Source: Dimorphilus gyrociliatus
Lineage: Eukaryota; Animalia; Annelida
Length of the DNA: 64,000 nt
Direction of reading: 5' to 3'
NCBI GenBank assembly: GCA_904063045.1
Contig: CAJFCJ010000006.1
Location: forward strand, 806,001 to 870,000
Under the pieces are notes generated by a model. The model saw only the letters and a list, made by a program, of their open reading frames with translations, had not been told where the DNA came from and did not search any database. Both the position numbers and the translations under genes were made by a program. The stretch's first letter is position 1. The number at the start of each line of letters is the position of its first letter. This document shows, one piece after another, positions 38,152 to 44,627 of this stretch.

Positions 38152-39483
38152 TTATTTAGTCTCGTTTAACTCAATTTCACTTGTTTTGTCTGGAAGGTCG
38201 CCATTTTTTCGAATTTTTCCCCTTAAAAATTTACCACCAGCGAAACCTAACGTTTTATAGTAGGAGGTGAAAATGAAATATATGCTTTAATTTAAATCAT
38301 ACCAGCAATCCCGCCTCCTACGGCAGCTGCAGCCCCGAGTTTCAATCCGGCCACAAGACCGACGGGACCACCGACGCATCCACCAATTAATGCTCCACAA
38401 AAAGGATATACAGCAGTTTTATATTTTACAGCCTGTTGTTTTATTAGTGTATAAATAATGTGTTTATTTTAAGAACAGTAAACCAGCTCACTTGTTTTAA
38501 GTAACTTCTACCAACTGATACGTTTTCTTCCGTTCTTGCAACGTTTTCCTCTATACCATCTACTTTCGCTTTTTGATCCTGGAAATGAAAACAGGTACAA
38601 AAAGCACCAGAATAAATATCAATCTTACTGATATAGCTACATGAAACGCCTCCATTATCTCCTGGACTTCGTTTATGCTCTAAAATAAATTTTTTTATTT
38701 TCTTTATTTACATTAAACATTTTCGAACCTTTCCAAGTTCAAGGCACTGTTTTTCATTTTCCTTTATTATTTCAAGGTGATGTTGGTCAACAGTGGCCAA
38801 ATCTTGTAGAGTTGAGTTCTCTTGACTTGATATCAATGATTCGTCGAGATCAGATGATTCGTTTGATGATCGTCTACCACCTGATAATAGCCTTCAAGAA
38901 GTAAGGAATAAAATTAAGTCAAGACCAACCATCGGCAAACAACAATGATTTTTCGGAAACTTCCTTCAATTGATTATTACAATCTAGCGTTGCTTTATTA
39001 AAAAAGGTATCGAACTCTTCAAGATCCTCATCGCGCACCTTATGAAAAATATATATAGTATTTGTATATACAGTATTAAGTTATTATTAAAAGTTAAATA
39101 GTTAATATTGCAAGAATCCTTATAAAAATATATTGAGCCCTATGAAAAAGAAATCAATAAAAATTGTAAACATACATGTTTCCTAGAAATTTTTAATCGT
39201 TGTATAATATCCTTCAACTGATTTACTGATCTCTGAGTATTAATTTGTTCTTTTTTTACATTTTTAAAATCATGTGAGTGATAAAACTGAAAAATATCTT
39301 TGATAAATTGATAAATTGTTCACTATCACCTAAGTTATTTTATAATACCTCTTCCAGATTTTCAATATGATTCTTTAATCGATTTAAACCGATTTCTATA
39401 TCTGAACTAAAGCTGGTTATCGTTCTTTTAAGTTGAAGAATTGAATATTTTTGCACCATTTCTTGATTATTTTTCTTGTCCAT
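38152..39483 (-). CDS. STX17: Syntaxin-17 (autophagosomal SNARE); not in the ORF track
   Basis: C-terminal glycine-rich hairpin TM (GALIGGCVGGPVGLVAGLKLGAAAAVGGGIAG) preceded by a SNARE-like exon. Start MDKKNNQE at 39483. Confidence 0.85.
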
Positions 39484-39935: not shown

Positions 39936-42900
39936 ATGTCACTCAAAGAAGAAAGTTGGGATAAAGATCATACTGTTGTGTTTATTGCAATAGTTGGTTT
40001 AGTGATCTTATTTACTCTGCTTTTATTGTACTGCTTCATTAGTTTATTATCACAATATTGTCCATCTTTTTTTATTTTACAACCAATTCGAGAAAATGAC
40101 ATGCCTTTTCTATTAACGTTGTATACAAGATTCAAATGCGCATCTGGGACAAAAATGAAAGTAAAAGTTCAATTAATTGGAAGCAATGATGAAGCTTATA
40201 CATTCAACTTAAGTCATCTAACTGAAAACTTTCCAACTGGTAGCTCTATCACATTTTTAGTTTTCAGTCCTCCAATTTTTGAAGGAATTGAAACTCTTAG
40301 ATTAATTCTAAATCCAATTCCCAACTATAAAGATGAATGGAAGCTAAAACAAATTCATGTTTATGACTTTTTAAAAGGTAAGAAAATGACTAATAACTGT
40401 GTGGTTTATTATAAATTTGATACTTTTTTAAGATAAAAATTATTACTTTAATCAATCCAATACTATAAAAACTTACAAATGTCAGGAAATGTCCATTATC
40501 ATTCCAGTATCACCTCAAACTTTGACTTCAAGTTGTAGTCATCAAATTCTCAAATTGTTTTTTGAACATCATATTTGGTTAAGAATGATTTGTTGCCTAA
40601 ATAGAAATATCCTTTTTAACAATTTCGCAACTTATAGCTTATTCATATTTCATCTATTATTACTCTTTGCAGTCTGTGCAATAGTAACAAATGCTGATTT
40701 ATATCCTGGTTTGTCTCTTCATATACTTATATCCATTATGTTTTGGACTTTTATTTCATGGCTAGTTTGCTGCATTTGTGACAGTTTTCTTAGGCATACG
40801 AAGCCGAAAGAGCAGGAATCTAAAAGAAATGCTATACATAGTGTATTTGCTCATAGCATAATATGTTTATCCTTTTTATATTCCTGCTCTAGAAATCAAA
40901 AATTAATGAACCTATGTTCAGTCAACTTGGTCAGCTGTTATCAAGTAAATTATTTAAAACAAGGCAACGAGAGGAAAAAGAGAATAAATTAGCGAAGGTC
41001 TGTTTATAATTGTAGAAGTTCTCTCAATTTTACTTTCTGTACGGATTTAGCTTCGGAAATGCAATTTATCTATGACTTCGGAATGGTACGACAGCCTACT
41101 AAAGTCAATGTCTCTGATTGATTTGGAATCTTTAGAATATTATCCTACTTTTCCAAAATATATTTCTCTTATCAATCAGACTTCACATATTCCTAATTCT
41201 GTTCAATCATTTCCAAACGTTTCTTTTGTTAAGAAATCAGTTTCATTTCAACGATTGAAAGAGAAAAAAAGTTGCCCATCACGTTTGCAGATGATGATTA
41301 CTCATCGGAGAAAAGACAAGTCAAAAATTTGTAAAAAGAGATTCATGAATACTAAAATCTGGCATGTAAAGCACTCTAAATTTAGTCAACAAATGCTAAG
41401 AATTTTTCAGTCTTATGAAATCAATAAAAAAGAGCTAATGCAAGATATCGATTCATGTGCAAAAGATATTAGATTGAAAGGACACTGGAAAGATAATATT
41501 CCCGATTTAATATTGGACGAGGTATTCTTTGTTAAATACAATATAAAAATTTGTTTATGTTTTACTTTATAAACTATTTAGTTCTGTATTGATCCTCGGA
41601 AGATAGAGGATGTCTTACAAAGAAAGTTATCATCATTTGTACTAGCCAGAAGTTTGGAAATTGGTAAAAACTTTACTAAATTCTCAAAATTCCAATCCGA
41701 AGTGAAAAATGAAATATTGAGTATTCTCTATTCAATGAATAATAAACCTCGATCAATCTTTACTAAGAAGCATTGTCCGCTTTCTAAATATACCAAATGT
41801 ATTATTGAAAGTAGTGGCGATTGGAGGAAATATGCGAAAGAACTTATAAAGTTAAATAATGAAAAAACTGAAAATTTTCTCAAAAATGTCATTGAGATCA
41901 TTCAAGCTAATGGATTTATCATATCTGAAAAGATGTTAGGCAAACTTTGTTCTGAAGTTGTTAGTTCTGTCTCTCTGCTTATCGAATTTGATTGCGAAGG
42001 ATTGTCAAACAGAGCTATTAAGTCAATGAATGCTTCGTCTACTCAAATGATTCCCAGTACAGAATTATGGAGTTTGTTAGACTCCAAAAGTGGTTGTATT
42101 TCGAAATTTTTCCAAAATAAACTTAAAAGGAAGAATTTTCTTTCATATAACAAACTTACTAGAGGAGAATCAAGGATGAAGTTCCTGGACATAAGCAATT
42201 CGCTTAAAATTGTTGTACGTGATGAAGTTAGGAGAAAAGATAAAATATTGCGAAGACTAGTCCTATGTTATGCTCTCGTATTCAACAGGAATAAATTTGA
42301 ATGTTACTTTAAAAGATGTATGACTTTAGATTTAAAAAGACAAATAGTGCGATTAGTTTGTGGAAGCATTTTCCTAGTGAGTTTTATTAATTATATCATA
42401 AGTTTTACAGTTCTAAATCGTTGATCACTTAGAATTTATCAGATGACAATGTAGTTCGGCTTTTGAAGAAAGATCTTCAACATCAAGCAAGGTAACAGGA
42501 CTAAAAGATTAATTTTACAAACTAAACATATGATTGATTTAAGATTTGACTGGATAATCAGAACTGTATTAGAGTTAGCTATAGAGAAGACTAAGAATTT
42601 GAATGATATTCCCTATTACGAGATGAAAACATTAAACTTACTTACTCAATCTATTGAGAGGTACATCTTGAAAGAATCAATCAATTCTACAGCTCGTTTA
42701 TTGAGAAATAAACTTACATTTGGAAAACAACTTCATAAAGATTATTTCAACACCAATAAAAATAATTGGACAAGTAAATCTAATTCCAATTGTTATTATA
42801 ATGAATCAAATTTGAGTTTAAAGGAAAAAAGTCTTGGTAAACCTCCATCTCTGAATCTTGAATTGGAAAATGACCTCGGTTTAATGAAAATTACACGATC

Positions 42901-43180
42901 AGAAGTTACAGAAATACAACGCTTTCTAACTGGAGCCTATAGCAATTCATTACCTTGGATTACTAACTTATATGTTTATTTCTTTATATTTTTACTAATT
43001 ATTATAGTATTTATTATATTAGCGACGATTTTTAATGATTCAAGTCATCAGCAACTAAATTTAATTTTTAAAACGTTCTTGTTTAGTTTATTGTTTCATT
43101 GTTTTTTTCTTGAAACCAGTAAAGTTGCTATTATAGTTGGTTTAAGAAACAAAATGTCCTACTCGCAACGGTTCGTTTAA
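39936..43180 (+). CDS. Truncated polycystin-1-like protein (TM1-PLAT-TM2-TM3-long loop-TM4-TM5), about 948 aa; join(39936..40377,40433..40944,41051..41521,41582..42317,42443..42491,42544..43180)
   Basis: TM1 (TVVFIAIVGLVILF), PLAT-like region (LLTLYTRFKCASGTKMKVKVQLIGS..FPTGSSITFLV..WKLKQIHVYD), EHHIWL before TM2, and LPW..TM4..FSLLFHCFFLETSKVAII (TM5). The two junctions around exon 42443-42491 are less certain. Confidence 0.72.
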
Positions 43181-43308
43181 TCTTAAGTATAAAAAGCAAT
43201 GTAACATTTAAATAGATTGATCCACTAATACGATATCAGTTCATTTATATATTGATATATTTTTTATTGGACGGAAGGAGATGACTTTATCTAATATCAG
43301 TTACCAGT

Positions 43309-44627
43309 TTATTTTATCTGTACGATTAAACGAAAAGAAAATAATTATAAATTATACTAGCAAAATTTTTTCTTTTTACCTGAGATAAAAACAAATCGAC
43401 GAGTTTACCTACAAATTCTTCTTTCCTATATATTAACCTTGAGCCTCCCGCTTGATGTATCTGTAAAATATAGATATTATTTGCATAAATTGAGACAGAA
43501 AGTTGGTTGGAATGTGATTTCGAAAATGCTAAATGGTCTTTCTAAAATTTTATAAAATTCTTACATGCAAGATAAAAAAAGGATAATTGAACTATTATTT
43601 TTAAAGTTATGGTGATCTTACCTCAAACGTCTCCTATAGATTTATATTATACATGTTTTTGTTTTTAAGTTATTTAATAAAAACGTTAATAAAAAATGTA
43701 TTATAAATAGTAATACTTACTCTTTGGACAATATCATATATTTTATTGGGTCCAAGTTCATAGCAAGCTTCTACTAACCTGGAAAAGTGGATCGAAAGAA
43801 AACTAACCATCTTTTCAAGATCGAAGATAGCAAATAGTTACCCAAGAACATCATCCGGTTTTCTGGAAACAGCTCCTTGAAGTTGTCTAAATAAAGCATC
43901 ACCAATGGCTCTATCGATTTGACCTGTATTTTCTTTGTCTAGATTTTCAAACAGTTTTTGACTTCGTTCAACGTGATCTAAAAGACAAAATAGTTCGAGT
44001 ATTATAAAAGATTAACACAGAATATTCGAACCTATAAAAACACATGCCAGAAATACACCATCTCTAAAGACATGAAAAGGAATATATTCCGCTTCTCGGC
44101 AATATATCTTCCTTAAAAGTTTTTCTGTATATTGTTGTGAAGCTTGCCTTTAAAAAGTTTTGTATAATACTGATGTATCTTAATTATTAATTATTTATAA
44201 CTTACATGCATAACAGTTGTAAAATCTCGGTATAGGATATACCCGTTACTCCCTTAGTAATAGAAGTTTTCGAACCTTGCAATTAAAAAATTCAATATGT
44301 TTAAATATTGCAAATAAGTATTGAAATAAATAAAAGGTTTCACTTTTGTGTGACATTAGCATTTCGTATGAGTCTCTAACATTTATTTTAAACGCCTCTT
44401 CATTATATGGTGTTTGCTTTATCATTTGGAAGGCTTTATTGACTTTATTTGACTTTTCTGCAGCATTTTCAAAGCTGAAAAAATATACTTAAAAAAATGA
44501 TTTTAGCTTAAACATTTAGACCTACTATTCAACTAGATAGTTAATTGGATTTTCAGGTTGATTCTGTATCAATTTCAGAATAGCTCCCCTTATTAGCAGA
44601 TTAGTTCCTGATTTCTCTGTACATAAA

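Follow-up and report, generated by a model that had tools for sequence, protein, structure and literature searches.

A PLAT membrane protein with a polycystin-like layout and a neighbouring, probably separate, two-helix membrane protein in Dimorphilus gyrociliatus

We analysed a stretch of 64,000 nt from the genome of the worm Dimorphilus gyrociliatus (hereinafter the window; all coordinates are window positions). The G+C content is ~30% and introns are 50–60 nt long; the median intron reported for the species is 66 bp (PMC7854359). The locus of interest contains six plus-strand coding blocks between 39936 and 43180, with canonical GT-AG boundaries and introns of 52–60 nt. Specifically, the blocks are E1 (39936–40377), E2 (40433–40944 or 40433–40992), E3 (41051–41521), E4 (41582–42376), E5 (42433–42491, 59 nt) and E6 (42544–43180). 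Chance does not account for the length of their open frames: with stops at a local frequency of 0.082 per codon, 265 open codons have a probability of 1.5e-10. An earlier reading of the letters (the original prediction) had placed spliced coding exons on the plus strand here, which is confirmed by the canonical GT-AG exons and by the splicing of three introns in RNA. It had further joined the blocks into one continuous open reading frame (ORF) of ~948 aa, taken to be a stand-alone copy of the first five transmembrane helices (TM1–TM5) and the PLAT domain of polycystin-1. This joined frame does not hold up well. The locus contains, with a probability of roughly 0.6, two adjacent ORFs on the same strand, ORF A (333 aa, 39936–40992) and ORF B (646 aa, 41072–43180). 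ORF A is genuine and expressed, a PLAT membrane protein confined to this lineage whose TM1-PLAT-TM2/3 layout is polycystin-like, and ORF B is probably a separate two-helix membrane protein rather than part of one five-helix chain.

ORF A has two exons. Exon 1 (39936–40377) contains the start ATG, a 12-residue N-terminus, TM1 and most of the PLAT domain. The proposed start, 12 residues before TM1, is retained, with an in-frame TAA directly 5′ of the ATG at 39936. TM1 was located by hydropathy at aa 13–41 (39972–40058). The PLAT/LH2 domain comes directly after this helix at ~aa 52–172 (40089–40506) and is split by intron 1 (40378–40432). Exon 2 (40433–40992) contains the end of the PLAT domain, a linker, TM2, TM3, a basic RH..EQE.KR motif, a non-conserved tail and a TAG stop at 40990–40992. 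TM2 (40621–40704, ~aa 211–238) and TM3 (40708–40791, ~aa 240–267) were located by hydropathy and are aligned with the corresponding helices of a related species (hereinafter the relative).

The original prediction described the domain after TM1 as PLAT-like, and a PLAT domain in ORF A is now established, with profile scores, invariant core residues and structural comparison in agreement. The Pfam PLAT model matches exon 1 alone with an E-value of 0.017 and 16.3 bits, under the 23-bit cutoff because the last PLAT strands are encoded in exon 2. In the exon-by-exon Pfam and NCBIfam scans, this weak match was the only one, and the other exons of the locus returned nothing. An exhaustive HMMER search with exon 1 over 1.84 billion representatives returned one 147-aa ORF at 50% identity and five multi-PLAT LOXHD1-like proteins (P0002–P0006; E-values summed over their repeats of 1e-19 to 3e-5). 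A custom profile built from the repeats of these LOXHD1-like proteins gave 40.5 bits for exon 1 (E-value of 3e-14 in a local search of four sequences) and 32.1 bits for exon 1 of the relative. In an alignment of 23 rows, residues T64, G71, T72, G82, F107 and W135 do not vary. The AlphaFold2 model of exon 1 built on the 23-row alignment has a predicted local distance difference test (pLDDT) score of 88.8 and contains a helix (residues 10–41) followed by a beta-sandwich. In the VIA comparison, the model superimposes on the PLAT domain of 5-lipoxygenase with a Z-score of 12.7 and a root-mean-square deviation of 1.7 Å over 95 residues, followed by 15-lipoxygenase (Z-score of 10.2) and alpha-toxin (Z-score of 10.0); lipases were also matched. 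Foldseek assigned the model to PLAT with a probability of 1.0. The feature of the PLAT/LH2 superfamily, an eight-stranded beta-sandwich with conserved core residues, is present in ORF A. A feature search of the ESM Atlas with exon 1 gave PLAT-fragment leads, the best at 0.84, below the threshold of 0.9.

The frame of ORF B opens at 41051, directly after a TAG, and its first ATG is at 41072. The ORF is made of four exons, namely the E3 part from 41072 to 41521, E4, E5 and the last exon E6. Its first ~570 residues are predicted to be helical and cytosolic and are family-less. They are followed by a C-terminal two-helix hairpin (42974–43144), whose helices, 'TM4' (~42974–43030) and 'TM5' (~43055–43144), have hydropathy peaks of 3.28 and 1.82 and are both kept in the relative. 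A basic tail of about 13 residues follows the last helix. No family was found for ORF B in the exon-by-exon Pfam and NCBIfam scans, and an ESM Atlas feature search with exon 4 gave nothing recognisable. The AlphaFold2 model of exon 4, built on a two-row alignment, has a pLDDT of 33.5 and is unusable. All five hydrophobic helices of the original prediction are found in ORF A and ORF B taken together and are kept in the relative, whereas the 'LPW' motif that it had noted before TM4 is not kept there. The counts of lysine and arginine place the flanks of the TM2–TM3 hairpin in the cytosol and fit a cytosolic ORF B tail.

The syntenic locus of the relative was found via the 147-aa match and is contained in six Logan contigs (L001–L006; runs SRR23372228/229/231/232 and SRR31984831/834). 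The six contigs differ by one single-nucleotide polymorphism in 4.6 kb and thus represent one strain, not independent evidence of fixation. The gene order INTS4-STX17-A-B-TPGS1 is common to the window and the relative. Exon 1 of ORF A is orthologous in the two species; it has the same start and ends in phase 1 in both. The two species also agree in the position of intron 1, in the phases of the last three introns and in the length of the small exon (59 nt). In both species the protein begins with a Met just before TM1 and a stop comes just after the last helix. Protein identity to the relative is 37% for ORF A and 31% for ORF B, compared with 43–77% for the STX17 exons. The ratio of nonsynonymous to synonymous substitution rates (dN/dS, NG86) is 0.33 for ORF A and 0.36 for ORF B, values that are a rough guide because dS is saturated (1.7–1.9). 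With frames open in two species at 31–37% identity and dN/dS of 0.33–0.36, this gene region is functional, though diverged. It is not the pseudogene that the original prediction had raised as an alternative, being spliced, expressed and open in two species. Homologous-protein searches with exon 1, A1 and A2, in a length window short of full-length ORF A, ORF B and A+B, returned the relative's ORF fragments alone. Exact look-ups of the single-exon ORFs of the D. gyrociliatus genome in the contig collection gave no record. Expression of both ORFs is weak, and both are diverged and restricted to this lineage. The Logan sets of the relative are also useful for comparing other loci of the D. gyrociliatus genome.

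One gene and two genes differ in how the interval 40945–41050 is read. It is either a 106-nt intron with the donor GTAAAT at 40945, or it begins as the tail of exon 2, with AATAAA (40983–40988), the TAG stop (40990–40992), a GT (40998) that may mark a poly(A) site or a donor, and, at 41049–41050, the acceptor AG. Joining the six blocks via the 106-nt intron gives a frame of 2,916 nt (971 codons), not far from the ~948 aa originally proposed, and the predicted single chain depends on this joint.

One public run was judged to be RNA, its contigs being without introns. The contigs confirm three of the five introns of the original gene model, namely 41522–41581, 42377–42432 and 42492–42543, which are all three introns of ORF B. 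For ORF A, one contig covers 40133–40343 within exon 1. Another, RNA contig 3, is unspliced from 40596 to 40997 and reads through both the donor at 40945 and the TAG, although the other introns are spliced, and no RNA contig supports the 106-nt intron. The final six letters of RNA contig 3, past 40997, do not match the genome, and AATAAA lies shortly before them. No differing letter was found elsewhere in the same run, and a real junction at 40997 is therefore likelier than an error. Given AATAAA at 40983–40988 and GT at 40998, this junction marks either a poly(A) site or the beginning of a 53-nt intron that extends to 41050, and in both cases the ORF A stop is present in the mature RNA. The interval 40998–41050 is bounded by GT and AG, is of local intron size and lies between the ORF A stop and the ORF B ATG. 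If it is spliced, both ORFs would be in one mRNA, 26 nt apart, which would be notable in a species reported to lack operons.

The frame is interrupted in the relative. Specifically, the TM1-PLAT-TM2-TM3 frame ends at a TAA 13 codons past the conserved RH motif. The stretch from TM3 to this stop lacks any GT, and a systematic scan of the relative found no GT-AG intron that joins ORF A in frame to ORF B before the stop. The ORF B ATG lies 194 nt past the ORF A stop, and ORF B is intact for 588 codons. Because this long intact frame lies beyond a stop that no GT-AG intron can take out, ORF B must be translated on its own in the relative. Two ways around the stop were considered and rejected. An assembly error does not explain it, as the contigs of all six runs have the identical stop, and GC-AG introns would lie inside the conserved RH/EQE codons and delete conserved residues.

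The tail of ORF A points in the same direction. In the window, ORF A extends ~50 codons further than in the relative, to the TAG at 40990–40992, and this extension is not conserved as protein. An AATAAA or ATTAAA lies 7–21 nt before the ORF A stop in both species. The introns that could be drawn to fuse the two ORFs have phase 0 in one species and phase 2 in the other, whereas the four real introns keep phase and position. In addition, an AT-rich DNA block of ~30 nt (plus strand, 40871–40899; L001 2080–2108) is conserved between the species, with a local score of 60 compared with 19.9 ± 3.6 for shuffles, and was confirmed by DNA alignment. The distance from this block to the conserved EQE codons is 74 nt in one species and 69 nt in the other, and the block is in different reading frames. 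Its retention in different frames indicates that the ORF A tail is not under shared coding constraint. The block lies inside the ORF A tail in the window and in the A-B spacer in the relative, and it is kept though synonymous sites are saturated elsewhere. It is a candidate regulatory element upstream of ORF B and may act as an ORF B promoter or a 3′-end element.

Several observations weigh against two separate genes. Only 79 nt separate the ORF A stop from the ORF B ATG, and D. gyrociliatus is reported to be without operons or trans-splicing and to have sizeable untranslated regions (PMC7854359), so that two independent transcription units would overlap. The in-frame donor GTAAAT at 40945 and the acceptor at 41050 exist, and the RNA contigs leave 40998–41200 uncovered, with the A-B junction itself unseen. 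In the relative, the ORF A frame is open for 41 codons past the TAA (L001 2054–2243), which has a probability of ~2% by chance. A GTTAAC donor at 2140, similar to the intron 1 donor GTTAAA of the same species, and an AG at 2242–2243 define a 104-nt intron that could join the post-stop frame of ORF A in frame to ORF B. This open frame may be a trace of a once-fused gene, or it may be chance.

These observations would suit a single gene of six exons that encodes one 971-aa protein, with TM1-PLAT-TM2-TM3, a cytosolic loop of 640 residues and TM4–TM5; such a protein would reproduce the N-terminal membrane domain of polycystin-1 as a stand-alone unit. The close spacing and the reported lack of operons agree with one transcription unit, the canonical donor and acceptor yield the in-frame 2,916 nt, and the relative's ORF A frame runs past its stop to a usable donor. 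Moreover, the RNA contigs of ORF A and ORF B are alike in their low depth (3–7), and the topology with five helices in a single chain satisfies the positive-inside rule. Either the single gene would be ancestral and the relative would have acquired a recent nonsense mutation, or it would be a new fusion formed after the stop of ORF A was lost in D. gyrociliatus. However, it has to face the RNA contig that passes through donor and stop, the genuine stop in six runs of the relative followed by an intact ORF B, the differing phases of the implied fusing introns and the conserved tail block read in different frames. We therefore consider one continuous protein an unlikely, though serious, alternative.

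A further alternative keeps two chains and gives them one function. ORF A and ORF B, made from bicistronic or overlapping transcripts, would come together in the membrane as a bundle of five helices, the equivalent of the N-terminal domain of polycystin-1. This bundle would act free-standing or as an exchangeable accessory subunit, possibly docking onto the worm's PKD2-like or giant PKD1-like channels. The adjacency and order of A and B are kept in two species, but all neighbours are syntenic and adjacency alone says little. Splicing of the GT 40998–AG 41050 interval would place both ORFs in one mRNA, but it is unusual for an animal to translate the second of two long ORFs in a bicistronic mRNA. 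The combined topology matches TM1–TM5, and the nearest predicted-structure clusters for the helix plus PLAT are PKD1-like; however, no segment of polycystin-1 is similar to ORF B, and there is no evidence of interaction. Such a split module is improbable.

The last alternative, a decaying non-functional relic of a polycystin-1-like duplicate, could draw on the low RNA depth (3–7 compared with 200–300 for two neighbouring genes), on the lower identity to the relative than that of the STX17 exons and on the finding of no relatives outside the two species, but it is largely refuted by the retention, in both species, of open frames (333 and 646 codons) despite a stop frequency of 0.08 per codon, by conserved exon structure and correct splicing, by intact PLAT core residues in a confident fold and by the dN/dS values.

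The flanking genes agree with the original prediction. The minus-strand STX17-like gene, a SNARE with a glycine-zipper hairpin, starts at 39483, 452 nt upstream (~450 bp had been proposed). The minus-strand TPGS1 gene, which matches Pfam TPGS1_C, has its stop at 43309–43311, and its coding end at 43309 lies 128 nt downstream, as proposed; its last intron (43318–43379) is spliced. The TPGS1 3′ untranslated region is at least 207 nt long (43102–43317, minus strand) and is antisense to the last 79 nt of ORF B (43102–43180, plus strand). The TPGS1 RNA contig has a depth of 268, and ORF B and TPGS1 form a convergent transcript overlap. In the relative, further plus-strand ORFs are found past TPGS1, at the position where the window has its ionotropic-receptor-like gene.

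The ectodomain and the channel half of polycystin-1 are absent from this locus and from the syntenic locus of the relative. No REJ domain was found by Pfam, only 12 residues precede TM1 and STX17 fills the upstream DNA, and the relative is alike. No GPS/GAIN domain was matched by Pfam before TM1, where there is no room for one, and the short N-terminus with its Met start is kept in the relative. For the TOP/polycystin domain and TM6–TM11, there is no PKD_channel or Polycystin_dom match, the stop comes 13 residues past the last helix, and no plus-strand ORF resembling a TOP domain or TM6–TM11 is present before the ionotropic-receptor-like gene at ~45300. Ectodomain and channel exons are excluded because a stop precedes the ATG, STX17 and TPGS1 flank the locus on the minus strand and this order is kept in the relative. 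The claim that no GAIN/REJ or TOP/TM6–11 exons belong to the gene is thus upheld, with Pfam negative and the flanking genes leaving no room.

Polycystin-1 family proteins have REJ, GPS and PLAT as their defining domains, the first TM being immediately followed by PLAT (PMC1934368); TM1–TM5 form the N-terminal domain and TM6–TM11 the TRP-like half (PMC8357825). One of these family features, a PLAT domain directly after the first helix and predicted to be cytosolic, is present in ORF A, and as in polycystin-1 it is followed by a helical hairpin. ORF A and ORF B together resemble polycystin-1 in having five helices arranged 1 + 2 + 2 and a long cytosolic stretch between TM3 and TM4. Unlike polycystin-1, the locus lacks REJ, GPS/GAIN, stalk, TOP and TM6–TM11, no sequence similarity was found outside the PLAT domain, and the worm chain is probably broken after TM3. 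The TM3–TM4 stretch of polycystin-1 is roughly 200 residues, and that of the worm is far longer.

Sequence searches do not connect the locus to polycystin-1. Searches against PDB with exon 1 and with two-species profiles of exons 1, 2, 4 and 6 matched no polycystin chain at E-values up to 10 and gave no significant match of any kind, and the exhaustive HMMER search with exon 1 returned no PKD1-like protein at E-values up to 1e-3. The description of TM1, TM4 and TM5 as 'PKD1-type' accordingly finds no sequence support in the PDB-chain searches. In an ESM Atlas shape search with the helix plus PLAT, the nearest clusters are PLAT/GPS and 'PKD1-like 3' (TM-score by query of 0.62), and in that search only these two hold PLAT proteins in which a helix precedes the domain. 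The TM1-then-PLAT layout is the only link to polycystin-1. In layout, ORF A resembles the start of the polycystin-1 membrane domain; family membership is not shown, and three defining features are absent. Of the proposed independent, non-channel TM1–5/PLAT unit, what stands is a protein without ectodomain or channel half; the single five-helix chain and membership of the polycystin-1 family are not supported.

Other PLAT proteins resemble ORF A in different respects. Plant PLAT1/ATS3-type and spider-mite proteins are secreted or soluble. As in ORF A, these small proteins have a single PLAT domain as their main folded part, but none has the TM1-PLAT-TM2/3 arrangement. The multi-PLAT LOXHD1-like proteins are the closest sequence matches to exon 1 and have core residues in common with it, yet they are soluble chains of 4–13 PLAT repeats; the tandem soluble array is absent from ORF A, which has one PLAT domain flanked by membrane helices. 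Sea urchin SpREJ1 and SpREJ2 are PKD1-family proteins with 1–2 TMs and without the channel half (PMC1934368). They resemble the worm protein in the latter respect but keep a large REJ/GPS ectodomain, the hallmark of the family, whereas the worm protein has 12 residues outside.

On the two-ORF reading, ORF A would be a three-pass protein with a 12-residue outer N-terminus, TM1, a cytosolic PLAT domain, a TM2–TM3 hairpin and a basic cytosolic tail. By analogy with the PLAT domains of lipoxygenases, lipases and polycystin-1, which dock on lipid surfaces and recruit partners, ORF A may serve as a membrane-tethered PLAT module, that is, a lipid- or partner-binding adaptor rather than a receptor or channel subunit. 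It may descend from a polycystin-1-like gene, of which this genome has many copies, a descent that is not demonstrated. ORF B would be an unrelated neighbour or a partner of ORF A, and its transcript probably starts inside or just past the ORF A tail.

As it stands, the finding is modest, with the descent of ORF A from polycystin-1 unproven and ORF B family-less. Gene models in a compact genome can also usefully be tested on this locus, where two long same-strand ORFs lie 79 nt apart in a species said to lack operons. The TM1–5/PLAT part is the least understood part of polycystin-1, a major disease protein, and the channel half of polycystin-1 functions without it (PMC8357825). A natural protein with TM1-PLAT-TM2/3 alone would offer a simple system for the function of a membrane-clamped PLAT domain.

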